From sequence record ON529852.1: DNA of 64,000 nt, one strand, 5' to 3'. The notes beneath the pieces were generated by a model, which saw only the letters and a program-made list of their open reading frames with translations, made no database searches and had not been told where the DNA came from. Both the position numbers and the translations under genes were made by a program. This document shows, one piece after another, positions 3,120 to 53,737 of the stretch. Every line of letters starts with the position of its first letter. The first letter of the stretch is position 1.

Positions 3120-3634
3120 CAGCGCTCGGCCTTCGGGTGCGTGTTGGTCAAGGCCCAGCCCTGCTGGAAGGTGGTCAGCCCTTCCAGTTCGGCCTCGGTG
3201 AGCGCCTTGGCCCGGCCGCCGTTGCCCCAGCCGAACCAGGTCTGGAACGGCGCCGCCGGCAGGGCGTGAGCCGCCGCCATGCGGGCGACGGCGGCGCATT
3301 GCTCTGCGTCCGCGCCCCAGGTGGCGAGGTCGATCACGCCGTCATCGCGCGCGCCAAGAAGGATGGCGCCGTGCAACGCGCGTTGATCCGGCGCCAGGGC
3401 GCCATGCCAGCCGCGCATGTAGTCCGCCAGCACGGCGGCGTCTTCCTCATCCAACCCCCGCGCCCGCCAGCCGGTGAAGCCGTCCAGCAGGAGCAGCAGG
3501 CCGATCGCTTTCAAGCGGTGGCGCACCATCAGCGCGTCCATCCGCTCATGGTGCTGCTCTCGCGCTTCCGCCGTGAAGAGGTCGCGGGCGTCGGCCGCTT
3601 TCAGCCGGCTGTCGGGATCGTCTTTGATCGCCAT
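3119..3634 (-). CDS. hypothetical protein
   Basis: ATGA-coupled ORF in operon. Confidence 0.7.
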   Translation of the reverse strand: MAIKDDPDSRLKAADARDLFTAEAREQHHERMDALMVRHRLKAIGLLLLLDGFTGWRARGLDEEDAAVLADYMRGWHGALAPDQRALHGAILLGARDDGVIDLATWGADAEQCAAVARMAAAHALPAAPFQTWFGWGNGGRAKALTEAELEGLTTFQQGWALTNTHPKAER

Positions 3635-19175: not shown

Positions 19176-20303
19176 ATGACTGCATCCAAAGGCTTCGACA
19201 AGCCTGTCGCCCAACCCGTGCCCCAGGCCGTCAAAGACGCGGCCGCAGCGACGGGTTGGCACGCCGCCGACACCTATGAGCCCCGCGCGACGGGTCTCAA
19301 TGTGGCGCAGGGACAACCCCCCGCGACACGCCCCTCTGGCGTCCCCTCGGGGCGCGCCCTGACCCCGTTCACCCTGCAAGAGGTGGTGGACTACGGCAAG
19401 CCGCAGGCGACCGCCGCCGCCACGGTGGCGTCGAAGATCACCGGCTCGGCGCGGGCCGGGGACATCGACGAGGTCGGCAAGGCGCTGACCGCCCTGCTGA
19501 CCGGCGCCCAACAGTATGATCCGTCCAAGCTGGGCAAGGGCGGGTTCCTGGGCTTCTTCAAGCGCAAGAAGCGCGAACTGGAAGCCCACTACAAGTCGGT
19601 GGACGCCCAGGTGAACACCCTGGCGGCGGACGTCCAGAAACACATCGGTCATTTCCAGGGCCGCATCGGCGATCTGGAAGCCCTGAAGAAAGAAAACGCC
19701 GCGCGTCACGGCGAACTCGGCGCGGCGATGGAGCGCGCCAACGAGCGCATCGCCTGGATGAAGGCCAACCCGCCGGAAGTCGACGCCACCGACCCGATGT
19801 CGGCGACCAATCTCCAGACCTGGAACAATGTCATCGCCTACGCCGAAAAGCGTGTGGACGACCTGCGTCGCGCCCAGATTCTCTGCGAGATGCAGGCGCC
19901 CCAGATCGACATGATGCAGCAGAACGCCGGCATGCTGGTGATGAAGTTCGGAGAGGTTCAGACCACGACCCTGCCGCAACTCCAGATGGGCTTCTCGCTC
20001 TACATCGCCAATATGGAGGCCCAGAAGGGCGCCGACTTCTCCAAGGCGATCGACGACATGAACAACGACCTGATCACCCGGAACTCGGCCCAGTTGGGCG
20101 CCACGACGGTGGCGGTGCGCCAGCAGATGGCGCGCTCGTCGGTCGACCTGACTACCCTTCAGACGGTCAAGGACAATCTGTTCAACACCATGGATGAGTG
20201 TAAGCGCATTCAGTCCGAACTCTCCACCCGCCTGCAAAACGAGCGCCCCGCTCTGGAACAGGCCAGTCAGGACCTCGCCGCCCGTCTCGCGACCGGCGCC
20301 TGA
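19176..20303 (+). CDS. telA: TelA/KlaA toxic anion resistance family protein
   Basis: KGGFLGFFKRKK...HYKSVDAQV, long coiled coil, TTLPQL..., SSVDLTTL. Confidence 0.8.
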   Translation: MTASKGFDKPVAQPVPQAVKDAAAATGWHAADTYEPRATGLNVAQGQPPATRPSGVPSGRALTPFTLQEVVDYGKPQATAAATVASKITGSARAGDIDEVGKALTALLTGAQQYDPSKLGKGGFLGFFKRKKRELEAHYKSVDAQVNTLAADVQKHIGHFQGRIGDLEALKKENAARHGELGAAMERANERIAWMKANPPEVDATDPMSATNLQTWNNVIAYAEKRVDDLRRAQILCEMQAPQIDMMQQNAGMLVMKFGEVQTTTLPQLQMGFSLYIANMEAQKGADFSKAIDDMNNDLITRNSAQLGATTVAVRQQMARSSVDLTTLQTVKDNLFNTMDECKRIQSELSTRLQNERPALEQASQDLAARLATGA

Positions 20304-20345
20304 TCCTTCTCCCGCCTTCCTCCTACAGAACAAGGATAATCCCGC

Positions 20346-21113
20346 ATGGCTGTCATCGACCTGGAAAAGAAAGTCGAGAACGTCACGATCTCGCTGGCGA
20401 AGGCCGGCATCACCAAGGTGCCGCCGCTGCGCGTCGCCGCCGTCTATGACGACTCCTACTCGATGCAGCCGCTCTACGCGAACGGCGCCGTCCAGAAAGC
20501 CGCCGACCAGGTTCTGGCGGTCGGCATGAAGTTCGACGACGACGGCCAAGTGGACAGCTTCAAGTTCCACAACGAGGCCTTCTACGTCGGCACCCAGGAC
20601 GAGAACCAGTTCGGCACCTTCGTCAAGGAAGCCATCCTGACGCGCAAGGACCTGTGGGGCGGCACCAGCTACGGCGCCGGACTGAAGGCGGTCATGGACT
20701 TCTTCTTCGGCGCGGGCATCCGCTCGACCGCCTTCGTCCCCGGCGCCAAGAAGAAGGGCCTGTTCGGCTTCGGCGGCGGCCAGTCCAAGGGCACCTACGA
20801 GACCAAGACCTTCAAGAGCGAGGGCACGGACCCGGTCATGGTGATGTTCTTCACCGACGGCGAACAGACCGACGGCATGGCCGCCTCCAAGATCATCGCG
20901 GCGGCCGAGAAGGCCAACCAACCGATCTACTTCAACCTGATCGGCGTCGGCAGCGCGACCAACTTCAGCTATCTGAAGAAGCTGGCGGACGACTATGACA
21001 ACTGCGGCTTCGTCCACCTGAAGGGCTTCGAACTGACCGACGCCCAAATCTACGACGCCCTGCTGGGCACGGAAGAGGTCGTCGCCTTCCTGCGCAAGCA
21101 CGGCGCCTCCTGA
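20346..21113 (+). CDS. von Willebrand A domain protein of ter-cluster type
   Basis: MIDAS-like DDSYSM, WGGTSY, FFTDG, FNLIGVG, LADDYDNCGF. Confidence 0.85.
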   Translation: MAVIDLEKKVENVTISLAKAGITKVPPLRVAAVYDDSYSMQPLYANGAVQKAADQVLAVGMKFDDDGQVDSFKFHNEAFYVGTQDENQFGTFVKEAILTRKDLWGGTSYGAGLKAVMDFFFGAGIRSTAFVPGAKKKGLFGFGGGQSKGTYETKTFKSEGTDPVMVMFFTDGEQTDGMAASKIIAAAEKANQPIYFNLIGVGSATNFSYLKKLADDYDNCGFVHLKGFELTDAQIYDALLGTEEVVAFLRKHGAS

Positions 21114-21180
21114 TCGACCCTTTTGGCCCGGCGGCGGAGATCGCCGGGCCGCATCATCAACGACATAAGGACCACACCAT

Positions 21181-22176
21181 ATGGACATCGGGCTCGGCTA
21201 CGTAGCCTTGGCGGTCATCGCCCTGGGGCTGCTCGCCTTCGATCTTTACAACCACCGCAAGCCCGAAGAGGTGTCGATCAAGAGCGCAGCGCTCTGGTCG
21301 GGCTTCTACGTCCTGGCGGCCCTGGGCTTCGCCCTCTACATCAACTTCCAGTATTCGACCGAGTGGGCGCAACTGTTCCTGACCGGCTACGCGCTGGAGA
21401 AGGTCCTGGCGGTGGACAACCTGTTCGCCTTCATGATTATCTTCTCCTACTTCGGCGTCGCGTCGAAGTTCCAGCACAACATCCTCTACTGGGGCATCCT
21501 GGGCGCCATCGTCTTCCGGGGCGTGTTCGTGGTGCTGGGCACGTCGTTCACGGCCCTGTTCGGCCCCTGGGCGCTGCTGATCTTCGCGGCCATCATCGGC
21601 TACACCGCCATCAAGATGCTCCAGGGCGGCGGCGATGACGGCGACGAGGCGGTCGACTACGCCGACAAGTGGTATATCAAGGGCGTCAAACGCTTCCTGC
21701 CGGTCACCGAGAAGACCGACGGCGGCAAGTTCTTCCTGAAGCTGCCGACCAACGCCGGCAAGACGGCTCTGTTCGCCACCCCGATGTTCCTGTGCCTGAT
21801 CGCCATCGAAGTCACCGACGTGGTCTTCGCCTTCGACAGCGTCCCGGCCGTGATCGCGGTCACCAAGGAGCCCTTCCTGGTCTATTCGGCCATGATCTTC
21901 GCCATCCTCGGCCTGCGTTCGCTCTACTTCGTGCTGGAAGCGCTGCGCCGCGTCCTGTCGCGCCTGGAGACGGCGGTCATCTTCATCCTGCTCTTCATCG
22001 CCGGCAAGCTGACGGTGCAGGCAGGCTCCACCCTGGTCCACGACTTCACCGGCGCCATGCAGCCCGTGCATATCGATCCGCTGCTCAGCCTCGGCATCGT
22101 CATGACCCTGCTGGTCGGCGGCGTGATCTGGTCGCTGGTCAGCCCCGTCAAGGACGACGAAGCCGAAGCGGCCTAA
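21181..22176 (+). CDS. terC: TerC family integral membrane protein
   Basis: GYALEKVLAVDNLF, EVTDVVFAFDSVPA, AILGLRSLYF. Confidence 0.93.
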   Translation: MDIGLGYVALAVIALGLLAFDLYNHRKPEEVSIKSAALWSGFYVLAALGFALYINFQYSTEWAQLFLTGYALEKVLAVDNLFAFMIIFSYFGVASKFQHNILYWGILGAIVFRGVFVVLGTSFTALFGPWALLIFAAIIGYTAIKMLQGGGDDGDEAVDYADKWYIKGVKRFLPVTEKTDGGKFFLKLPTNAGKTALFATPMFLCLIAIEVTDVVFAFDSVPAVIAVTKEPFLVYSAMIFAILGLRSLYFVLEALRRVLSRLETAVIFILLFIAGKLTVQAGSTLVHDFTGAMQPVHIDPLLSLGIVMTLLVGGVIWSLVSPVKDDEAEAA

Positions 22177-22251
22177 GTCGACCTCCCCTACAGGGTCGGC
22201 GGCGCGGGCGAACCGCCGACCCTCTACCTCGCCCACCACAAAGGAAACTCC

Positions 22252-22899
22252 ATGAGCGTTATCGACCTCTCCAAGGGCGCCAACATCAACCTGGCGAAAG
22301 ACGCCCCCGGCGTCACCCGCTTCGTCATCGGCCTGGGCTGGAACGCCAACCCGCAGAGCCCGCCGGACCTGGACGCCTCGGTCCTGCCCTGCACCAAGGT
22401 CGGCGGCAACCCGGTCCTGCCCGACGACAAGTCGTTCGTCTTCTACGGCAATCTGAAGTCCACGGACGGCGCCATCATCCACTCGGGCGACAACCTGACC
22501 GGCGACGGCGACGGCGATGATGAGCGTATCGCCATCGACACCGCCAAGCTGAACCCGGCGATCGACGACATCCTGATCGTCGTGACGATCCACCAGGGCA
22601 AGGAGCGCGGTCAGAACTTCGGCCTGGTCCGCAACGCCTACGCGCGCATCTACGACGCCGACAAGCTGGCGGCGGCGGAAGCGGCCAATCCGAACCTGTC
22701 GGACAAGGAACTGCACGACCTCGCCCTGGCGCAGTATGACCTCGAAGAAGACGCCGGCGGCTACACCGCCCTGGTCTTCGGCGAACTCTACTCGAAGGAC
22801 GGCGACTGGCGCTTCAAGGCGCGCGGCGAAGGCCGCAACGAGTCGCTGGGCGAACTGGTCACCAGCTACCTGCCGGCCGGCGTGTCGGTCTCGGGCTAA
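22252..22899 (+). CDS. terD: TerD family protein
   Basis: GLGW, DLDAS, VFYGN, HSGDNLTGDGDGDDE, NFGLVRNAY, GELY...WRFKA. Confidence 0.95.
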   Translation: MSVIDLSKGANINLAKDAPGVTRFVIGLGWNANPQSPPDLDASVLPCTKVGGNPVLPDDKSFVFYGNLKSTDGAIIHSGDNLTGDGDGDDERIAIDTAKLNPAIDDILIVVTIHQGKERGQNFGLVRNAYARIYDADKLAAAEAANPNLSDKELHDLALAQYDLEEDAGGYTALVFGELYSKDGDWRFKARGEGRNESLGELVTSYLPAGVSVSG

Positions 22900-22911
22900 G
22901 CCTTCCGATGA

Positions 22912-22941
22912 GGCCGGGGGACGTTCGCGTCCCCCGGTTTT
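22912..22941 (+). terminator. intrinsic terminator
   Basis: GGCCGGGGGACG-TTCG-CGTCCCCCGGTT followed by T run. Confidence 0.85.
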
Positions 22942-22996
22942 CGACTACCTTGTGAGACGACCGGCCCGCGCGGCCGAAGACCTGGAGGACGTTTCC

Positions 22997-24328
22997 GTGC
23001 CCAAGCCCGCCCCGCCCCCGATTGATATGGAAGCGCTGGTGCGTCGGCCGAAGAAGGCACAACCGAACGTCCCGCCGCCGATCGACATGGAGGCGCTGGT
23101 GCGGCCCCGCAAGCCGTCGGCCCCAGAGACGCGCGCCCATCCTGTCGACGTCGACATGGAAGCGCTGGTGCGTCGCCCGAAGAAGGCTCCCGCCAAGGTC
23201 GAGCCTGTCGAAGACCCCAGAATTGAAGTCTACATTCAAAACCGCGTCAACGGATGGAAGCCCGTCATGGCCGCCGGCGCCGCTGGATATAACGGAAATC
23301 AGGGCCATTCCCTGGAGAACGATCCGGACATCCAGGCGAGGATCGCCCAGCGCCTGGCGACGCGGCCGGGGGCGGTCCCCCAGAGCACGGGCGGCGGTTT
23401 CTACGGCAAATCCGCGCCGGCTCCGGCGACCGATATGGAGGCTCTCGTGCGCCGCGCGGGGCCGCCTAGCCCCGCCGAGGCATCCCTGACGGAATACACC
23501 CTGTACGCCATGGCGCGCAACGACGGGTATAAGGGCACGCTTGTGGAGTATGTCACCCAACACCGCGCCAAGGTCGCCGCCGGTCCCGACATGGCGGCGC
23601 TGGTCGCCCGCCGGAATGCCCCGTCGCGTTCCGCCCCTGACATGACGGACTTGATCCGCCGCCCCGCTCAGGCCGCCGCTCCGGCGAACGCCAACGCCCG
23701 ACGCAACCAGCAGGTCAATGCGCTGATCGAGCGCGCGCGTCAGGTGGAGCCCAGCGTCGTTGACGGCATGCGCTTCAACACCCGGCTTCACCGCTTCCTG
23801 GACTTGCGGCCGACCGCCTGGACGACCTGGGGCGAGGACGAAGCCCGCGTCGTGGTGCAGTCCGCTTCGGGGCAGGCGGAGGCGTCGCGCCAGCTTTCCC
23901 TCGCCAACGCCGTCAAGTGGGCCGCTGAATGCGAGCAGGCCTACGCCAAACCGCCGGGGTTCATGGACCGCTTCTCCCAGCAGACGCGCCCGGAATTCTA
24001 TCGGGTCCGGCTGGAGCAGTCCCGCGACATGCTGATCAAGGTCCAGGACGACCTTCAGCAGGTGCAGGACCGGGTGCGCGAGAACCTGGACCGGCTGCGG
24101 ATCGACGTGGTCGTGCTTCAAGTCGCCACCGAGCAGGTCACCGACGCCTCGGATTCGATCATCGCCACGCGTCGCCTCCAGACCCTGGTCCAGGTGCAGG
24201 CGACCGCCGCCATGATTCTCCAGGGCTGCGAGAGCCTGGCCCAGACCGCCGCCGCCCAGGCGGCCACGGTGTCGTCGTTGCTGACGGTGACGATCCCCAA
24301 CTGGATCATCGCCCAGCAAAATCGCTGA
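22997..24328 (+). CDS. TelA-like coiled-coil protein with N-terminal DMEALVRR repeats
   Basis: GTG start after GGAGG; six D-M-x-x-L-V/I-x-R motifs; C-terminal VTIPNW resembles TelA end. Confidence 0.75.
   Translation: MPKPAPPPIDMEALVRRPKKAQPNVPPPIDMEALVRPRKPSAPETRAHPVDVDMEALVRRPKKAPAKVEPVEDPRIEVYIQNRVNGWKPVMAAGAAGYNGNQGHSLENDPDIQARIAQRLATRPGAVPQSTGGGFYGKSAPAPATDMEALVRRAGPPSPAEASLTEYTLYAMARNDGYKGTLVEYVTQHRAKVAAGPDMAALVARRNAPSRSAPDMTDLIRRPAQAAAPANANARRNQQVNALIERARQVEPSVVDGMRFNTRLHRFLDLRPTAWTTWGEDEARVVVQSASGQAEASRQLSLANAVKWAAECEQAYAKPPGFMDRFSQQTRPEFYRVRLEQSRDMLIKVQDDLQQVQDRVRENLDRLRIDVVVLQVATEQVTDASDSIIATRRLQTLVQVQATAAMILQGCESLAQTAAAQAATVSSLLTVTIPNWIIAQQNR
23024..23662 (+). repeat. six coding repeats of DMEALVRR motif
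   Basis: copies start at 23024, 23084, 23153, 23432, 23588, 23639. Confidence 0.9.
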
Positions 24329-24340
24329 GGCGCTTGGCGC

Positions 24341-24378
24341 TTAATAGTTGACGGCTGCCGTCGAAACTGGTTAATAGT
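24341..24378 (+). promoter_or_regulatory. rtcB promoter bracketed by TTAATAGT direct repeat
   Basis: TTGACG 24348; TTAATAGT at 24341 and 24371; GACGGC-T-GCCGTC palindrome over -35. Confidence 0.65.
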
Positions 24379-24406
24379 GCCAATATAACTGGCAGAGGAG
24401 TCCGCC

Positions 24407-25645
<1,239 letters not shown>

Positions 25646-30724: not shown

Positions 30725-31159
30725 GTGATGGGACTGACGCTCCTGCGGGGATACCTACACCGTAAGGCGTGGCCGCAGGGCGTCGGTTTCGAGGCGTTCG
30801 GCGTTCCCGCGTCGAGGCCTCCGTGGCGGGTGAGATGGGCGCGTGGGCTCTACACGGCCGCGCACTTCTCACCCTCTACGTGGCTCCATGATCTAGCCTG
30901 GCCGCCCTATGACTGTGACGACTGCATCGGCATGCGCGACCATGGTTGCTACTGCGCCGCCGTCGGCGCGGTGGCGCCGGGCGCCATGATCGACCCCTCC
31001 CGACACGGCTGGCGCCTGCTGCACGGCCTGATTTTCATCTGGACCTCGCCCTTCTGGGATGAGGTCGAACGCTCCTGGGAAGACACTGATGTCTGCATAT
31101 CTCCAAGCCCCAGCCCACATTGCGGCGGAAGCCGCCGGCCTGACGCCCGCCGATTTTGA
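30725..31159 (+). CDS. hypothetical Trp/Cys-rich protein
   Basis: CDDC..HGCYC; overlaps next ORF by ~70 nt. Confidence 0.5.
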   Translation: MMGLTLLRGYLHRKAWPQGVGFEAFGVPASRPPWRVRWARGLYTAAHFSPSTWLHDLAWPPYDCDDCIGMRDHGCYCAAVGAVAPGAMIDPSRHGWRLLHGLIFIWTSPFWDEVERSWEDTDVCISPSPSPHCGGSRRPDARRF

Positions 31160-36007: not shown

Positions 36008-36418
36008 ATGACATTCGTTGCTGACCCTCTTGAACCGGCGATCAACTCCGTGACCAACGGCCAGATTCTGTGCGAGACCCTGCCGCCGTGCTTCCGGCTG
36101 ACGTGGCTGGATCATTCGTTCCACGACGCGCCTAAAGGCGCTGAGGCCGCGCCCTACCACCGGGCGCGCGACTTCAAGCATCTTGGCGGCGCGATCGCCT
36201 GGGCGCGCCGGAGGATTTTCCACGGAGAAGCGTTCGGCGACGTGATCGAACTGGTCCGCGTGGACCGCCGGCGCCTGAACGGCGTCTACGCCGAGGAGCC
36301 TTACGAGGCGCGCGACATCACCCTGGCGGGCTTCCTGCCCTGGGATCGGAAAAACTGGAGCGGAAGCCCCACCGAGGTGGTCCTTTCGCGCCCCCACAAG
36401 AGGTGTAACTGGGAATGA
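36008..36418 (+). CDS. hypothetical protein
   Basis: first gene of NAD operon, ATGA-coupled to nadM-like gene. Confidence 0.7.
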   Translation: MTFVADPLEPAINSVTNGQILCETLPPCFRLTWLDHSFHDAPKGAEAAPYHRARDFKHLGGAIAWARRRIFHGEAFGDVIELVRVDRRRLNGVYAEEPYEARDITLAGFLPWDRKNWSGSPTEVVLSRPHKRCNWE

Positions 36419-37527
36419 CCCTTCGAGGCCCGAAGAAGAAACCCGACGTGATGGTCTTCATCGGTCGTTTCCAGCCGCTCCATAACGGGCACCTGGACGT
36501 GATCGCCCAAGCCCTCGCCGCCGCCGAACGGCTGATTATCCTGGTGGGCTCGGCCAACCTGGCGCGCGACACCCGCAACCCTTTCACCTACGAAGAGCGC
36601 GCGGCCCTGATCCGCACCGCGATCGAGCAGAAGTTTGGCGCTGAAACCGCCGCCCGCGTGGTGGTCTGCCCTGTGCCCGACAGCCCCTACGAACTTCAGG
36701 AGTGGATCGAGACCGTCCAGATGACGGTCAAGATGAACACCGTACCGTTCGTGCGGCCGACCATCAACCTGACCGGACACGATCGCGACGAGACCTCCTT
36801 CTATCTGAAGCTGTTCCCGCAGTGGCCCTACGCCGGAGCCGAAGGCGCCACCGATCTCAACGCCTCGGCGTTGCGCGCCGACTACTTCGACGGGGGCGTC
36901 GACCTTTTCAAGAACGCCTGGCGCGACAGCGGGCCGGTCTGGCCGGCGGTGGCGCCGCCTGCGACCCTCGCCTTCCTCCAGGCCTTCCGCGATCGCCCTG
37001 AGTATGCGCGGCTGATGCGCGAACTGAAGGCCGAGCGCGCCTACAAGGCCAAGTATGGTCCAGGCCCTCACGTCACCCTCGACGCGGTGGTGATCCAGTC
37101 GGGCCACGTCCTGGTCGGACGGCGCAAGGGCGAATACGGCCACGGCATGCTGGCCCTGCCGGGCGGCTTCTTGGAGGTCGCGCGTAACGAAACCCTGCTG
37201 GAGGGGGCCGAGCGCGAGTGCTTCGAGGAGACCGGGCTGTTCAACCACTTCGGCCCGGACAATCTGATCACCGACGAACGCCGGCGCATGCTGCACACCC
37301 ACCTGCGCGGGACCCACGTCTTCGGGGACCCGAACCGCTCGCGGCGCGGCCGCCTGATCACCCACGCCCACCTGTTCAAGCTGCCCGACGACTACACCCT
37401 GCCGCCGGTCGAGCCCTGGGACGATCTGGAGGACGTGCACTGGATGCCGATCTCGGACGTCCGCGCCGACGAGTTCTTCGAGGACCACGCCTTCATCATC
37501 GAAAAGATGATCCGGCAGTTCCTGTAA
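36415..37527 (+). CDS. nadM: bifunctional NMN adenylyltransferase / ADP-ribose pyrophosphatase (NadM-Nudix)
   Basis: GRFQPLHNGH, RNPFTYEER, Nudix PGGF...AERECFEETG. Confidence 0.93.
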   Translation: MTLRGPKKKPDVMVFIGRFQPLHNGHLDVIAQALAAAERLIILVGSANLARDTRNPFTYEERAALIRTAIEQKFGAETAARVVVCPVPDSPYELQEWIETVQMTVKMNTVPFVRPTINLTGHDRDETSFYLKLFPQWPYAGAEGATDLNASALRADYFDGGVDLFKNAWRDSGPVWPAVAPPATLAFLQAFRDRPEYARLMRELKAERAYKAKYGPGPHVTLDAVVIQSGHVLVGRRKGEYGHGMLALPGGFLEVARNETLLEGAERECFEETGLFNHFGPDNLITDERRRMLHTHLRGTHVFGDPNRSRRGRLITHAHLFKLPDDYTLPPVEPWDDLEDVHWMPISDVRADEFFEDHAFIIEKMIRQFL

Positions 37528-37561
37528 AACCCAACCACATTCACACGAGGGGGAAATCTCC

Positions 37562-38989
37562 ATGGTCATTCGCGATACTGACGATCTGCCAAACCATCTG
37601 GCGCCGCTGCCCTATAACCTGATCGCCGACACCGACAGCTACAAGCTGGGTCACTGGACGCTCTATCGGAAGGGCACGACCACCGTCTACAGCTACATCG
37701 AGCCGCGCGGCGGGCGTTACCCGGTGGTGATGTTCGCCGGACTTCAGAAGCTGCTCTACGAGAAGCTGGGCCAGCCGATCACCCGCGACCAGGTCGAGGA
37801 GATGGCGAAGTTCGTGCCCGCGCACGGCTTCGAGTTCAACCGCGAGGGCTGGGAGATCATCCTGAACGAGTACGGCGGCCGCCTGCCGCTGCTGATCAAG
37901 GCCGTGCCCGAGGGCCTGGTCCTGCCGGTTCGCAACGCCCTGTTCACCATCGAAAACCTCGATCCGCGTCTGCCCTGGCTGACCTCCTACCTGGAGACGA
38001 TGATCCTGCGCGACCTGTGGACGTCGTGCACCATCGCCACGCGCATCTTCCTGATGACGCAGCGCATCAAGGGCCACTGGGAGCAGCACTCGGACAATCC
38101 CATGAGCCCCTTCGCCCTGCTCGACTTCTCGTCGCGCGGCACCATGGGCTACGACCACTCGGTCATGGGCGGCATCGCCTACCTGTTCCACTTCATGGGC
38201 TCGGACAACGTGCCGGCCGTGCGTGAAGCCAACTACTACTACTTCGAGGAAATGTCGGCCTATTCGGTGCTGGCCGCCGAGCACTCGATCTCCTGCTCCT
38301 TCGGCCGCGACAACGACGACGACTACATCCGCAACTCGCTGGAAGTCGCCAAGCCGAACTCGCCGCTGTCGCTGGTCGGCGACACCTGGAACATCTTCAA
38401 GTTCGCCGAGAAGGTGGTCGCCAACCACAAGGACCTGATCATCAACAAGGGGATCAAGTTCGTCGCCCGCCCGGATTCCGGCGAGATCGCAGACGTCCTG
38501 CCGCCGGTCTTCACCACTCTGGCGCAAGGCTTTGGCACCGACCGCAACTCCAAGGGCAAGGACGTCATCCGCTACGGCGCCGCCGTCCTGCAAGGCGACG
38601 GCATGAACGAGCACTCCCACATGGTGCCGTTCCAGGTCGCCGACGCCCTGGGTCTGGCCCCGGACAGCGTGATCACGGCGGCCGGCGGCGGCCTGATGAC
38701 CGCCGACCTCGACCGCGACACCATGAAGTGGGCGATGAAGGCCTCCGAGATGGTGATCGACGGCGAGCGCGTCGACATCTTCAAGGACCCGATCACCGAT
38801 CCGGGCAAGCAGTCCAAGCGCGGCCGCTTCGCCCTGGTGCGCGATGAAGACGGCGAATTCGCCACCATCAATCGCATCAACGACGCCGAGGACCGCGCCG
38901 ACCTGCTGGAGCCGCGCTTCCACAAGGGCGACGTGATCAACGCCACCACCCTGGCCCAGGTGCGCGAACGCGTCTCGGCCCAACTCTAA
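37562..38989 (+). CDS. nadV: nicotinamide phosphoribosyltransferase (NAMPT)
   Basis: TDSYKLGH, DFSSRG, AAEHS, RPDSG, QGDG, FKDPITDPGKQSKRG. Confidence 0.95.
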   Translation: MVIRDTDDLPNHLAPLPYNLIADTDSYKLGHWTLYRKGTTTVYSYIEPRGGRYPVVMFAGLQKLLYEKLGQPITRDQVEEMAKFVPAHGFEFNREGWEIILNEYGGRLPLLIKAVPEGLVLPVRNALFTIENLDPRLPWLTSYLETMILRDLWTSCTIATRIFLMTQRIKGHWEQHSDNPMSPFALLDFSSRGTMGYDHSVMGGIAYLFHFMGSDNVPAVREANYYYFEEMSAYSVLAAEHSISCSFGRDNDDDYIRNSLEVAKPNSPLSLVGDTWNIFKFAEKVVANHKDLIINKGIKFVARPDSGEIADVLPPVFTTLAQGFGTDRNSKGKDVIRYGAAVLQGDGMNEHSHMVPFQVADALGLAPDSVITAAGGGLMTADLDRDTMKWAMKASEMVIDGERVDIFKDPITDPGKQSKRGRFALVRDEDGEFATINRINDAEDRADLLEPRFHKGDVINATTLAQVRERVSAQL

Positions 38990-46169: not shown

Positions 46170-46204
46170 AAAAGGCCCGCTGGATCACTCCAGCGGGCCT
46201 TTTT
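46170..46204. terminator. bidirectional intrinsic terminator
   Basis: AAAAGGCCCGCTGGA-TCAC-TCCAGCGGGCCTTTT between convergent genes. Confidence 0.92.
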
Positions 46205-46205
46205 C

Positions 46206-46457
46206 TTATCGCCGTTTCTTGAACGACCGGGTCTTGGGCTTGAACCCCTTCACCATCGGGGCGCCGACGTGCCAATGATCGCCGTGGCGGCAGGGATAGG
46301 GCTCGACCGGCGTGGCGCCCGGAAGCGTCATCAGGTAGGCGGCGTGACGCTCGGCGTCTGTCCGTGACCGCGCGATCTTACCCCGACACTCATTCGGGGG
46401 CGCGGGGTCAACCGTTGGTGTCGGTAGGTCTCGCAAAGAGCGCAGCAGACTACCCAC
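46206..46457 (-). CDS. small protein with Cys/His cluster
   Basis: PYPCRHGDHWHVG. Confidence 0.65.
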   Translation of the reverse strand: MGSLLRSLRDLPTPTVDPAPPNECRGKIARSRTDAERHAAYLMTLPGATPVEPYPCRHGDHWHVGAPMVKGFKPKTRSFKKRR

Positions 46458-48015: not shown

Positions 48016-48162
48016 ATGCACTCCACGCCCCAGATGGGGATCAAGGGGCTTAACCGTATTGGAGACGCCTGTCAACGATCTCGGTCAAAAGACGTCGAGT
48101 GTTGACTGACAGCAGAGTTATGTCATACTTACGCTTCCCCCGCAACGAAGGAGTATCCCTGC

Positions 48163-48474
48163 ATGCAGATCAACACCCGAGGCGTGCTCCTGATCGCCGC
48201 CGTCGCCCTAATCGTGCTCAAGCTGGCCGGCGTCATCGCCTGGCCCTGGCTTGCGGTTCTCGTCCCCGCCCTGGTCTATCTGGCGCCCTTCATCTGGTCG
48301 CTCGCCTGCGCCATCGGCGCGGTCGCCGTGGGCCTGATCTTCCTGATCGGCATCCTGATCGTGGGCGCCTGCGCCAGCCTGGTTGAGGCGGTGCAGACGC
48401 AGCGCTGGAAGGCGGCGCGCCAGGCCCAGTTGAAGGCCGGCGCCCTGAAAGGCCCCTGGGACCTGCGCGCCTGA
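48163..48474 (+). CDS. membrane protein
   Basis: LKLAGVIAWPW..V motif, hydrophobic; AAGGAG RBS; promoter 48102. Confidence 0.8.
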   Translation: MQINTRGVLLIAAVALIVLKLAGVIAWPWLAVLVPALVYLAPFIWSLACAIGAVAVGLIFLIGILIVGACASLVEAVQTQRWKAARQAQLKAGALKGPWDLRA

Positions 48475-48716
48475 TGGGCATGGCGACCGGATCGTCCGGC
48501 TCCAACACCATGCCGGACTGGGTCCATGTCTACGACACCGCCGTCAGCCACAATCAGCCCGTCGGCGACGACAAGCCCGCGCCCCCGCCGAAGCGGCGCA
48601 AGCGCGCCAAGGCCCGCCAGAAGACGGTGGAGCACCTCTACGCCGATCTGATCAAGGCGGGGATCGTGCGGATCGAACGCAAGAAGGGGCAGCCACCCCG
48701 GATCATCTGGCTCTGA
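48474..48716 (+). CDS. basic hypothetical protein
   Basis: TGATG coupled. Confidence 0.65.
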   Translation: MGMATGSSGSNTMPDWVHVYDTAVSHNQPVGDDKPAPPPKRRKRAKARQKTVEHLYADLIKAGIVRIERKKGQPPRIIWL

Positions 48717-48719
48717 TAG

Positions 48720-48757
48720 AAAAACCCCGTAGGCGTCAGCCCACGGGGTTTCTTTTT
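48720..48757. terminator. bidirectional intrinsic terminator
   Basis: AAAAACCCCGT...ACGGGGTTTCTTTTT. Confidence 0.85.
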
Positions 48758-48912
48758 GCGCCGACCTCCGACGTCGCGAACGCCTGGAGGCCGCCGAGGC
48801 CTGACTTTTCGACCGACTTTCACGGTCGGGTTGGTCAATCACGCCGGCCCACCTAACCCGATGGCCCCTGTTCATGAGGCGCGGCCTTGGCCCGTCGACT
48901 GACTGTACCGCA
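48720..48912 (-). ncRNA. candidate structured ncRNA (~190 nt)
   Basis: own promoter 48957-48918 and terminator; several GC-rich stems; no RBS-led ORF. Confidence 0.55.
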
Positions 48913-48917
48913 CGCCC

Positions 48918-48957
48918 ACCCTAGAGCGTGACCCGGTCAACGTCAAGATTTACGGCA
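48918..48957 (-). promoter_or_regulatory. class B promoter TGCCGTAAATCTTGACG-N17-TAGGGT
   Basis: one of five copies. Confidence 0.8.
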
Positions 48958-48969
48958 CTGTGAAACGCC

Positions 48970-49001
48970 AAAGGCCCCGGCGACGAGCGCCGGGGCCTTT
49001 T
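48970..49001. terminator. terminator hairpin downstream of primase gene
   Basis: AAAGGCCCCGGCG-ACGAG-CGCCGGGGCCTTT. Confidence 0.8.
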
Positions 49002-49047
49002 CTGATCCTGCCGTATTCCCACCCGGCAGGACCGCCCGCCGGTCCCC

Positions 49048-52000
49048 TTAGGCAGCGAGGGGATCGGGCTGAGGCTGTTCTTCGAGGTACTGATCCACCC
49101 GTTGCAGGAAGAACATCGGATCGCCTTCCTCCGACAGGCCCGAACGGACCAGATAGTCGAGGTTGTCGATGCGGAAGGCGCGGCCGTCCAGGTTGTGCAT
49201 CTTCTTCTGGAACATGCGCTTCTTCTGGTCGTCGTTGTTGCCTTCGATGATGTCCATCTCCATGCCGTAGGCGTGGTTGAACAGGTCGCCGGTGAGCACC
49301 TTGTTGAAGCCGTACTTCTTGATCCACTCCTTCACGAAGGCGCGGATCGCCGTCTCGTCCATATCGGCGATGGCGCTGGCGCGGTTGTCCAGGAAGCCTT
49401 CGATGCCGCAGGCCTGGAGCACGCCGCCGACCTTGCGCGACCAGTCCTCGAACGAGGCCCGCTTGCGCTCTTCGAACATCGGCTTCTCCAGGTCGATCCA
49501 ATACTGGATCATCGTCAGGATGTAGCCGACGATCTTGGAGCGGTTCGAGTTCAGGAAGTCGGTGAAGTCCTTGTGGCGGAACACCCGCGTCTGGATGTCG
49601 ACCGTCTTGCCGTTCAGACGCACCCAGACGATTCGGCGCTCCATTTCCGACAGCACGATCGGGTTGTTGCCGGTGCCGATCCAGTTGAACAGGTTCGGCC
49701 GGCTGACATTGGCCGTCTTGCCCAGCATGCGCCCGCCGATTTCCTGCGCCGTGATCGACTGGAGCAGGGCGCGGTTATTGAACTCCTTGACGTCGTCGAA
49801 GAACAGGTGAGAACGAGTCTCAATAATCGCCGACAGCAGCGACTTCTGCATCTCCTCCTCGTTCTGCGTATAACGCATCGGGGCGCTCTCCTGGCCGTCG
49901 AACAACAGCATCGGCAGCTTGCCCAACAGGGTGCCGCCGGTGCCGGGGGTCGGTTTGGAGACGAAGAAGACCGGCGTACAGCCGTTGATCATCCGCCGCA
50001 TGAACGGGGTGATGATCATCGCCAGGGCGTTGGCCTCGGACGGCTCGCGCCGCTCGTTGCCGTTCGTATCGTAGTCCAGGAAGGGGAAGTCGATCAGGAC
50101 CTCTTCACGCAGGAAGGCGACCGCCTCCTCCACCTCATCCCAGGTCGGCGACTGCGGCACCGCAACGGTGAAGTTGATGTTCGCCATCAGGATGTTGAGA
50201 TCGGGCTTGTAGCCCGGCGTCATCACCAGATCGCCGTCGGCGGTGAACAGGGGCGTGTAGATGATCTCCGGCGACTGCGGCAGTTCATTATAGCACTGCT
50301 GGTAGACGTATTCGCCGACCTCCTTGGGGATGGCCTCGCGCGTGCCGTCACCCTTCTCGGAGCGCCGCATGAAGGTCATGCGCTTGTTCATCTCCGAGCG
50401 CATCGCCGCCTCGTTCAGGACGTCGAAGGAAATGCGTCCCGTCTTGGCGTTGCGGTTCAGGCGCACGGGATCGGTCTGGACGCAGGAGAAGGTGGGCTCC
50501 TTGTCCTTCTTGTTGGTCATGGTCAGCGTGCGGAAGCAGGCGTCGAAAGCCTCGTCGAAGTTGTAGCTGCTCTCGTACTCGAACACCTCGCGGCCCTTCG
50601 GGTCCTTGATCGAGCCCTTTTCGTTCTTCGCGCGCGAAATCTCCGCGCGCGCCGACTTCAGCAGCTTGGTGACGTTGGGCTGAGAGAGTTTCAGCGCCTT
50701 CCTGATCTTGGCCTCGATCTGGATGCTGCGGCGCGTCGGCAGGTTGGCCTCGATCACCGCGCGCAGGCAGTCGTCGACATCTTCTTCCGAAGAATCCTCC
50801 GTCAGGCCGTCGACCAGCTTTTCGTAGACCTCGCGCGCGTCGTCCTCGGCCTTGATCTTCTCGCCTTCTTCCGACAGCCCTTCAGCGCCTTCCTCCAGGA
50901 GGGCGTTGTAGGTCGGGTCGTCGATGGTGTCGCGATCGAACCAGTCGTCCTTGAGCATCTTGCCCAGGAAATCGAGATTGGTGCGCTGCGAGCAGCTATC
51001 GTGCTGGCACTTGATCGTGAAGATTTCGCTCGGTCCGTCGCCGGCGTTGACCGCGAAACAGCCCTTGTCTTCAGGATTGCCCGGATCGGAGTGATCCTCG
51101 TCGAAGGGGCACTCGATGTCGATCTTGTGGGCGCCGTTGGTGCGGATGCGGTCCTCGGCGTGGTCCTTGATCAGGTCGACGATCTGGAAGCCGCCGGCCG
51201 CCTTGATCGACCAGCGCCCGAGATCACGCCCTTCCTCGGTCGTGGACTTGGACTTCGGCTTGGACTTGTCGGTGGCCTTGACCTCGTTCAGCACCAGGTC
51301 GAGCAGGGCGTCCCCGGTCGGAGCGTCGTCCGCGCCGCCCGAGGTCAGTTCCAGCGATTTCCAGTCCAGCAGGTCGCCGCCGACGATGCGGGCCTCGAAC
51401 GGCCGGTTGGCGACGTGGCGCGGGAAGTAGAACAGACGCGACGGGTCAACCGCCGACCGGTCGAGCGGCAGGTCGCCCAAGGCCTTCGCCAGCGCATGGC
51501 AGACCTCGCCCCACATCTTCATGCCTTCGTCGTGGGTCTTCGCCACGGCGGTGGGCACGAAGGGCTCCGTCAACGGCAGCACGATGCGGTGCTTGGGCAT
51601 CGGGATGTGGTCAAGCTGGACCATGAACCCTTCCGGGTCATGGACGTCGTCGACGTATTCGACCGTCTTGATGATCGATTCGTCCCAACGCATGGTGGGT
51701 TCTTCACGCAGGAAGCGCTCGATCGTCTGCTGGTTCACGCCCTCGTCGATGTCGTGCTTCTTGCACCACTTGGCGATGCGGTCCTTCAGCATCTTGGTCG
51801 AGGTCTTGGCGTGGCTGTGGGTGGTGTAGCGCACCGCCAGCTTGCCCAGCTTGCTCAGGGCCTCGTCGATCACGGCGCCCGAGACGCCCACGTCGATGTC
51901 GAGGCCGACGCCGTAGCAGGCCTTGACGGCGGCCTTGCGCCGCTGATTGCCGACGATCTCGGCCAGGACGAAGGCCAGGCCGTCCTTGTTCTTGTCTTCG

Positions 52001-52704
52001 CGGTGACGCGAGAGCATGTCGACGAAGGTCCACACCGGCATGGCCTTGGGCGTCCACTTGACGGATTCGCGGTTGGCGCCGATGGAGATGATCATCTCGG
52101 GGGCGTAACGCGGATCGTCAAGCTGGAACGGGCTCAGCAGCTTGGCGTCGTTGAGCGCGCCGAAGTCTTCCTCTTCCCACGGCAGGGCGTAGCCTTCCGT
52201 CTGCACCGCCGGGGCGTCGATCAGGCCTTCCGGCGCCGGAGGCGCATCCTCGGCGTAGACCTCGGCCAGTTGCGCGAAGGTGACATAGTGTTCGGGGTCG
52301 AGGTGGACCAGGTCCCAGCCGTTGGCGCCGGGCGTCGGCACCGGGTCGGTCAGGAAGCCCGCCATCGCCTCGGCGATCGCCGTCACTTCCGGCGTCGCTT
52401 GAACCGCCGCATCCAGGGCGTAGGCGCAGATCAGCAGGCCGTCCTTGAACAGGACCGCCGTGGGCTTGACGACGTCATCCTGCCACTGGTCGGGCTGGGC
52501 GTTTTCGGTAAAGGCGTAGAGGAACGGCACATCGCCGTTGGCGGTCACCGGGTCCAGATAGAGGGCCTCGGCTCCAGCGGCGGCGGCGGCCGCCTCCAGG
52601 GATTCAGGGGTGGTGATTTCTGCGGTGACGTCACCGTAGATCAGGCGAAACGCGTCTTCGGTTGCGCTGACCAGCGCCGACAGGAATTCGTTCAGGGCTG
52701 CCAT
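49048..52704 (-). CDS. archaeo-eukaryotic-type primase fused to Zn-binding and helicase-like domains
   Basis: LDID, YTTHSH, KHRIVLP, SRLFYFP; CPFDEDH..CQHDSC; KPTPGTGGT, FFDDV, GTGNN. Confidence 0.8.
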   Translation of the reverse strand: MAALNEFLSALVSATEDAFRLIYGDVTAEITTPESLEAAAAAAGAEALYLDPVTANGDVPFLYAFTENAQPDQWQDDVVKPTAVLFKDGLLICAYALDAAVQATPEVTAIAEAMAGFLTDPVPTPGANGWDLVHLDPEHYVTFAQLAEVYAEDAPPAPEGLIDAPAVQTEGYALPWEEEDFGALNDAKLLSPFQLDDPRYAPEMIISIGANRESVKWTPKAMPVWTFVDMLSRHREDKNKDGLAFVLAEIVGNQRRKAAVKACYGVGLDIDVGVSGAVIDEALSKLGKLAVRYTTHSHAKTSTKMLKDRIAKWCKKHDIDEGVNQQTIERFLREEPTMRWDESIIKTVEYVDDVHDPEGFMVQLDHIPMPKHRIVLPLTEPFVPTAVAKTHDEGMKMWGEVCHALAKALGDLPLDRSAVDPSRLFYFPRHVANRPFEARIVGGDLLDWKSLELTSGGADDAPTGDALLDLVLNEVKATDKSKPKSKSTTEEGRDLGRWSIKAAGGFQIVDLIKDHAEDRIRTNGAHKIDIECPFDEDHSDPGNPEDKGCFAVNAGDGPSEIFTIKCQHDSCSQRTNLDFLGKMLKDDWFDRDTIDDPTYNALLEEGAEGLSEEGEKIKAEDDAREVYEKLVDGLTEDSSEEDVDDCLRAVIEANLPTRRSIQIEAKIRKALKLSQPNVTKLLKSARAEISRAKNEKGSIKDPKGREVFEYESSYNFDEAFDACFRTLTMTNKKDKEPTFSCVQTDPVRLNRNAKTGRISFDVLNEAAMRSEMNKRMTFMRRSEKGDGTREAIPKEVGEYVYQQCYNELPQSPEIIYTPLFTADGDLVMTPGYKPDLNILMANINFTVAVPQSPTWDEVEEAVAFLREEVLIDFPFLDYDTNGNERREPSEANALAMIITPFMRRMINGCTPVFFVSKPTPGTGGTLLGKLPMLLFDGQESAPMRYTQNEEEMQKSLLSAIIETRSHLFFDDVKEFNNRALLQSITAQEIGGRMLGKTANVSRPNLFNWIGTGNNPIVLSEMERRIVWVRLNGKTVDIQTRVFRHKDFTDFLNSNRSKIVGYILTMIQYWIDLEKPMFEERKRASFEDWSRKVGGVLQACGIEGFLDNRASAIADMDETAIRAFVKEWIKKYGFNKVLTGDLFNHAYGMEMDIIEGNNDDQKKRMFQKKMHNLDGRAFRIDNLDYLVRSGLSEEGDPMFFLQRVDQYLEEQPQPDPLAA

Positions 52705-53489: not shown

Positions 53490-53581
53490 GGGAAAGTTCC
53501 TCCGTTGATGTCGTCACGGAGTCACATAAAGAAGGTCGACGTGACTGTCAAGCGTCTGTCAACGATCTCACGCCAAAATCG

Positions 53582-53737
53582 TTAGATCGGCTTCTTGGCG
53601 CGGTTTTTGCCGGCGCGCGCGCCGCAGTGGCCGCACTTGGCCCCGGCGCGGACGAGCCGGGCGTCGCAGCGACACCAGAAGCTGCGTCCGCGCGGCTGCC
53701 GCGAGGCCTCGCGGTTGGTCAGCGGCGGGTCTTGCAC
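53582..53737 (-). CDS. 51 aa zinc-ribbon microprotein (not in ORF track)
   Basis: MQDPPLTNREASRQPRGRSFWCRCDARLVRAGAKCGHCG... Confidence 0.65.
   Translation of the reverse strand: MQDPPLTNREASRQPRGRSFWCRCDARLVRAGAKCGHCGARAGKNRAKKPI

Follow-up and report, generated by a model that had tools for sequence, protein, structure and literature searches.

A 331-nt unannotated gap in the genome of Brevundimonas phage vB_BpoS-Kabachok (ON529852.1, 356,285 bp, Dolichocephalovirinae) most likely holds a real, stand-alone small RNA gene that belongs to a family absent from Rfam. The candidate lies on the minus strand between KABACHOK_03240 and KABACHOK_03250, and the whole unit spans positions 48720-48946 of the 64,000-nucleotide stretch that we analyzed (the window; record coordinates are window coordinates plus 124,000). 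An initial annotation of this stretch had proposed a self-contained minus-strand non-coding unit between two terminators, and the corresponding promoter-body-terminator anatomy is indeed present in the sequence. From its layout and its pattern of conservation, the RNA probably acts in trans. The published genome paper of these phages annotates only protein genes and tRNAs (PMC10070969).

Anatomy of the locus

On one side of the gap, KABACHOK_03240 (48474-48716, plus strand) encodes a basic protein of 80 aa. This gene follows KABACHOK_03230, which encodes a small hydrophobic membrane protein of 103 aa, and the resulting 03230-03240 operon on the plus strand converges on the minus-strand RNA unit. 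A terminator (T2) is common to both. On the other side, KABACHOK_03250 (49048-52704, minus strand) encodes a protein of 1218 aa. The initial annotation had called this neighbor a primase. This assignment is not confirmed: the protein has weak PHROG matches to a DNA polymerase/primase (4e-12), a DNA primase (1.5e-7) and a DNA helicase (4e-6), whereas searches against Pfam, NCBIfam and PDB sequences returned nothing useful.

Downstream of the stop codon of KABACHOK_03250, the minus strand holds in this order a 10-bp hairpin, a first terminator (T1), the promoter, the RNA body, an A-rich linker and T2. The hairpin (49004-49033, minus strand; -20.8 kcal/mol, z -2.05) occupies the 3′ UTR of the 1218-aa gene between its stop codon and T1. 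It is invariant in all five phages that carry the unit, falls within the clade-specific inserted segment, and is possibly a 3′ UTR stability or processing element. T1 (48961-49000, both strands) consists of a GC-rich 13-bp stem with U-rich tails on both strands. Its arms (48970-48982 and 48988-49000) are perfectly complementary (-27.4 kcal/mol, z -3.7) and invariant in the five phages; the flanking linkers vary. T1 terminates the 1218-aa gene and insulates the promoter of the RNA from transcription that arrives from upstream. At the 3′ end of the unit, T2 (48720-48753, both strands) is the bidirectional terminator that had been described there. It is followed by a U-tract in both directions and is strong on the minus strand (-26.2 kcal/mol, z -5.2, UUUUU tail) as well as on the plus strand (-20.9 kcal/mol, z -5.0). 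One of its pairs has undergone a compensatory change from U-A to G-C.

The predicted sigma-70-type promoter (48918-48946, minus strand) combines a -35 hexamer TTGACG (48946-48941) with a 17-nt spacer and a -10 hexamer TAGGGT (48923-48918), so that hexamers and spacing are found as first reported. Transcription would start near 48911. The promoter had also been assigned to a "class B", a label that we could not confirm because the exact motif has no second copy in the window: 48918-48946 is the sole zero-mismatch match. By itself, this pattern is not significant and amounts to no more than chance. The string TTGAC-N18-TANNNT has one occurrence in the window, where 0.21 would be expected, and 18 of 100 shuffled controls contain it at least once. 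A sigma-70 consensus scan makes no call at 48918-48946, because the -10 hexamer matches the consensus at just three of six positions (T, A and the final T). The promoters of neighboring genes have a TTGAC -35 and a TAnnnn -10 element in common, with a spacing of about 17 nt and often with tandem TTGAC copies. It is the comparative evidence that lifts this candidate unit above chance. Between the Kabachok and the Marchewka/Bambus lineages, the promoter hexamers are invariant and the spacer differs at 7 of 17 positions; a 4-nt indel upstream of the -35 hexamer distinguishes Kabachok from Marchewka.

The body of the RNA (48911-48757, minus strand) is about 155 nt long and leads through the A-rich linker into T2. 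RNAalifold, applied to the three distinct sequences of the unit, predicts a consensus fold that begins with a small 5′ hairpin and a four-way junction and continues with a 3′ hairpin of about 16 pairs and T2. The predicted junction is closed by pairing of AGGCCGC with G(U/C)..GGCCU and encloses three hairpins with an AUGAACA loop, a 15-nt loop and a UGAAAGU loop, respectively. All four stems listed in the initial annotation are present in the sequence; RNAalifold recovers three of them and a variant of the long-range helix, and GCGGCCU, an alternative partner for AGGCCGC, is present as well. An invariant 5′ domain (48846-48911, minus strand) comprises the small hairpin and the AUGAACA hairpin, together with the 5′ strands of the long-range helix and of the hairpin that comes next. 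In all three sequence variants, the AUGAACA loop is predicted to be unpaired. The hairpin UCGGGUU-A-GGU / ACC-AACCCGA (48828-48859, minus strand), which is chosen by RNAalifold, carries the 15-nt variable loop. Four of its five variable positions are in this loop, and the fifth is the loop-closing pair, which is broken only in Marchewka. The hairpin GACCG / CGGUC (48811-48827, minus strand) with its 7-nt loop UGAAAGU is invariant in the five phages. The long 3′ hairpin (48759-48796, minus strand; about 15-16 pairs) is located just upstream of the A-rich linker and T2.

In the thermodynamic sense, the body does not deserve the term "structured" under which it had been introduced, since its folding energy falls within that of shuffled controls: relative to dinucleotide shuffles, the body without T2 has z scores of -1.22 and -1.63 in Kabachok and of -0.22 in Marchewka. 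The full unit including T2 reaches a folding z of about -3.8, and this value is due to T2. The predicted fold of the minus-strand body is more stable by 13.5 kcal/mol than that of the plus strand.

The unit had been described as free of an RBS-led ORF, and no frame within it behaves as coding. The only long frame starts with the ATG at 48875 and has no stop before T2; the differences between Kabachok and Marchewka along this frame are almost all amino-acid changing. A 66-codon TTG frame also crosses T2 and shows 2 synonymous versus 7 non-synonymous changes, and a plus-strand frame contains a stop codon in Marchewka and Bambus. Substitutions between Kabachok and Marchewka have no three-base periodicity. 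A 13-codon frame from the GTG at 48913 sits in invariant sequence, so that substitutions are uninformative on it. The 199-codon ORF at 48276-48875 (minus strand) starts inside the RNA, crosses T2 and runs antisense to KABACHOK_03240 and KABACHOK_03230. Since its substitutions are nearly all non-synonymous, we regard it as a spurious high-GC antisense frame.

Distribution, insertion and constraint

A blastn search with a 205-nt query across 50,697 phage records recovered the unit in exactly five phages, all of which infect Brevundimonas. It is identical in Kabachok, Domovoi and Papperlapapp; the copies of Marchewka and Bambus are about 90% identical to these three. The corresponding junction is a gap of 78 nt in Kikimora and Gurke and of 39 nt in CcrColossus. 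One bidirectional terminator only is present at this junction in Kikimora, Gurke, CcrColossus, CcrPW, Karma, Rogue and CcrBL10. In CcrPW, Karma, Rogue and CcrBL10, the junction lies between a convergent small gene, whose product has a similar C-terminus (IIWL in Karma), and the homologue of the 1218-aa gene. Among the six loci retrieved via the C-terminus of the 1218-aa protein, none contains the RNA unit. Since seven relatives have one terminator at this junction, we interpret the unit as an insertion. Because the position and the sequence of T2 are similar to those of the one terminator that CcrColossus and CcrPW have here, the inserted segment would consist of the hairpin, T1, the promoter and the body.

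Judged by these comparisons, the unit is a clade-specific, moron-like and apparently non-coding insertion. In the concept of Hendrix and colleagues, a moron is a promoter-gene-terminator unit that has entered between two genes which are direct neighbors in related phages. Classical morons have a protein gene as cargo and often a deviant base composition. Like a phage moron, the unit described here has its own predicted promoter and terminator and lies between genes that are separated by one terminator in seven relatives. Unlike in a classical moron, the cargo is non-coding, and the GC content (0.62-0.68 across the element, about 0.64 overall) is that of the genome.

Comparison of Kabachok with Marchewka shows that the unit is under nucleotide-level constraint. 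As a yardstick we used four-fold degenerate sites of neighboring genes, which differ at 147 of 794 positions (18.5%); the value for the adjacent 1218-aa gene is 16.7%. The first 66 transcribed nucleotides, counted from the predicted start, contain no difference (0/66; P about 1.4e-6 at 18.5%), a figure that derives from one pairwise comparison of mosaic genomes (gene identity 80% to 94.5%), so that a locally recent exchange could account for the invariant stretch. The body as a whole differs at 12 of 155 positions (P about 1e-4 at 18.5%). Changes in the gap concentrate in the linkers, and the hairpin, the T1 stem, the promoter hexamers and the RNA are conserved. Three of the 12 body differences fall into the loop of the long hairpin, one into the loop-closing pair, one into a linker, one into the long-range helix, where it turns G-U into G-C, and six into the 3′ hairpin. 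Despite these six differences, the 3′ hairpin keeps about 15 pairs through a compensatory change from U-A to G-C, changes from G-U to G-C and from G-G to G-C, and a register shift. All substitutions in the body are located in a loop or linker, are compatible with pairing, or lie at the end of a helix. In a covariation test, 61 of 500 shuffles reached the observed score; with three distinct sequences that represent effectively two lineages, this test is powerless.

Searches for relatives beyond these phages returned no known RNA family. Rfam covariance models gave no match at gathering score anywhere in the window. With the limit relaxed to E <= 10 on 48600-49100, the only matches were weak ones on the two terminators, such as NsiR1 with 24 bits, where the threshold is 39. 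ARAGORN found neither tRNA nor tmRNA in the window. The initial annotation had compared the RNA to 6S RNA, with which it shares a length of about 180-190 nt, a stand-alone gene and a sigma-70-type promoter. This likeness does not extend further: no 6S model matched at gathering score in the window or at E <= 10 on 48600-49100, and where 6S RNA forms a long hairpin with a central bubble, the predicted fold here is a multibranch domain with separate hairpins and terminal pairing of at most 4-5 bp. Searched with a covariance model of the body, the window yielded only the body itself, and ten loci from phages without the unit yielded nothing. No relative was present in a plasmid collection, four exact or gapped patterns had no match in IMG/VR, and two patterns had none in 185,579 genomes. 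A metagenome scan returned one contig (Ga0335075_10193901, 1768-1789) with a 22-nt exact match to the 5′ end of the RNA. This 22-mer lies at the end of an unrelated ORF with no further similarity around it, and we judge the match to be due to chance (roughly 0.1-0.5 matches expected, based on a rough estimate of the size of the collection). The literature that we searched contained no description of this RNA family.

Two known RNA types were considered and rejected. The four-way junction, with its 7-bp closing helix and a 5-bp hairpin with a 7-nt U...A loop, has a tRNA-like appearance, but the junction linkers do not fit, and neither ARAGORN nor a tRNA model supports this reading; no Rfam tRNA or tmRNA model matched at E <= 10. 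A bacterial Y RNA of the YrlA type was prompted by an RtcB gene 23 kb from the unit. There was no Rfam match to such an RNA, and no rsr (Ro60) gene is annotated among the neighbors.

Possible modes of action

Our preferred, still tentative, reading is that of an independently transcribed non-coding RNA of about 190 nt, delivered by a moron-like insertion, that serves as a trans-acting riboregulator of host or phage transcripts. An ancestor shared by the Kabachok and Marchewka lineages would have received the segment at the junction of the 1218-aa primase/helicase-like gene with the bidirectional terminator that was already there. The host sigma-70-type RNA polymerase would start near 48911, stop at T2, and make the RNA early. 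The invariant 66-nt 5′ domain with its exposed AUGAACA and UGAAAGU loops may provide the recognition surface for an RNA or protein partner in trans. The 3′ hairpin and the terminator would be constrained for structure only, in the service of stability and possibly of chaperone binding. We prefer a riboregulator because a sequence-constrained 5′ domain followed by a structure-constrained 3′ hairpin and terminator is the usual layout of trans-acting sRNAs; a promoter of its own and an intrinsic terminator with a U tail, both expected of this type of RNA, are predicted here. A blastn-short search for an antisense target in the 64-kb window gave exact matches of 12 nt at most. The best duplex energy of the 5′ domain within the same window (-63.3) is close to the mean best value of mononucleotide-shuffled queries (-63.6).

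For the jumbo phage PA5oct, four ncRNAs have been reported by RNA-seq (PMC7318152). The stand-alone ncRNAs of PA5oct resemble the present unit in that an intergenic promoter-to-terminator unit in a giant phage has no assigned family or function. They differ in that there is no sequence or Rfam relationship, and in that the present unit is known from comparative sequence alone.

A protein-binding decoy or sponge RNA that sequesters a host factor (RNA polymerase, an RNA chaperone, an RNase or a defence sensor) fits the data almost as well as a riboregulator, and we rate it as fairly unlikely. The 5′ domain is invariant in sequence and not just in structure, which suits a protein-recognition surface as well as a seed, and the lack of an antisense target in the window points in the same direction. 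In phages, accessory insertions confined to one clade often have to do with host takeover or counter-defence, and the unit is an insertion of this type. Against a decoy speak the lack of a 6S model at E <= 10 and of a long hairpin with a central bubble, together with the absence of a tRNA-like call and of an adjacent partner gene. A bolder proposal, which we consider quite unlikely, is a new class of structured phage RNA in which the invariant 66-nt 5′ domain would fold into a specific four-way junction that binds and neutralizes a protein of the host, for example RNA polymerase, a defence sensor, or a factor of RNA repair or RNA decay; the unit would then be an RNA-only counter-defence or takeover moron of giant alphaproteobacterial phages. 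It is also unlikely that the unit has no function in trans and represents regulatory DNA, a relic promoter and leader of a gene that has since been lost, or a source of transcriptional interference or terminator-overlap antisense on the 03230-03240 operon. This idea gains from the convergence of the unit on KABACHOK_03240 with T2 in common, by which the 3′ ends of the two transcripts are complementary over about 35 nt, from a body that is not thermodynamically special, and from the confinement of the unit to a very young clade. A relic, however, would be expected to drift, yet 0/66 and 12/155 differences stand against 18.5% at four-fold degenerate sites and against 7/17 in the adjacent non-functional spacer, and compensating changes maintain the 3′ hairpin. 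T2 is strong in both directions and restricts read-through, and relatives have the same convergent operon without the unit. Convergent antisense RNAs with overlapping 3′ ends are familiar from the prophage type I toxin-antitoxin pairs RatA/txpA and SR4/bsrG. As in these pairs, an RNA of about 190 nt runs toward the 3′ end of an operon with a gene for a small hydrophobic membrane protein, and the 3′ ends are complementary. Unlike in these pairs, the overlap is restricted to the terminator (about 35 nt), the membrane protein has 103 aa, a second gene comes after that of the membrane protein, and relatives carry the same operon without any such RNA.

Two further readings have little weight. That the unit encodes a small peptide, either from the near-leaderless 13-codon GTG frame at 48913 or by translation from the exposed AUG at 48875, appears very unlikely. 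This AUG lies in a loop that is predicted to be unpaired, Caulobacterales often translate without a Shine-Dalgarno sequence, and the 13-codon frame in the invariant region is beyond the reach of substitution tests; the AUG frame, however, has no stop before T2 and accumulates almost exclusively amino-acid-changing differences between the lineages, and the other frames are broken by stops or show the 2 synonymous versus 7 non-synonymous changes mentioned above, with no three-base periodicity. The initial annotation had also raised an origin of replication or a primer RNA, in which the transcript would form an R-loop or a primer used by the adjacent primase/helicase-like protein. The unit does adjoin a gene with weak primase/helicase PHROG matches, and local gene orientation switches in this region. 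We nevertheless consider this idea highly improbable: the element has no iterons or direct repeats and no AT-rich unwinding stretch (GC 0.62-0.68 throughout), the cumulative GC skew, suggested at the outset as a test, makes no sharp turn at the site, and the element is absent from seven relatives that keep the same neighboring replication genes. Origins of the T4 ori or ColE1 RNA II kind have repeats or an unwinding element and are conserved with the replication genes, and none of these features is found here.

Phage small RNAs are badly under-annotated, and the present locus shows cleanly how sequence comparison by itself can point to a non-coding unit that is constrained and was recently acquired, here in a 356-kb alphaproteobacterial phage. 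As it stands, the unit is a good but ordinary sRNA candidate; phage small RNAs and moron-like insertions are already known kinds. A confirmed transcript would make the unit an example of a moron with an RNA cargo, and also the first candidate riboregulator in Dolichocephalovirinae that we know of. Should the RNA prove to be a protein decoy, it would join the few RNA-based counter-measures known from phages. Kikimora and Gurke, as isogenic-like relatives without the unit, offer a natural comparison.

Other features of the window

Four sigma-70-like promoters with TTGAC and TAnnnn elements were noted, at 53520-53565 (minus strand), 48060-48100 (minus strand), 48102-48129 (plus strand) and 48918-48946 (minus strand). 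In three of them, that is, in all except the 03230 promoter at 48102-48129, TTGAC occurs in tandem, with the starts of the two copies 6 to 13 nt apart. The second TTGAC may serve as an alternative -35 element or as a regulator site.

Several gaps in the annotation contain open reading frames. An 83-codon ORF with Cys/His motifs (46206-46457, minus strand) lies in a 284-nt convergent gap that is annotated as empty in Kabachok, beside a strong bidirectional terminator at about 46172-46205; in the corresponding gap of Marchewka, a 41-aa gene is annotated. A 51-codon ORF with a zinc-ribbon-like CxC...CxxC pattern (53582-53737, minus strand) is also unannotated. It takes up most of the 250-nt "gap" between an integrase-like gene and KABACHOK_03270, and the integrase promoter follows directly after it. 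A 144-codon GTG ORF rich in Cys, His and Trp (30725-31159, plus strand) spans the 374-nt annotated gap between KABACHOK_02900 and KABACHOK_02910 and may be a missed gene. The regions 19176-25645 and 36415-38989 contain annotated TelA/TerC/TerD-like genes, the RtcB RNA ligase and an NAD salvage pair, which consists of an NMN adenylyltransferase/Nudix protein and a nicotinamide phosphoribosyltransferase.
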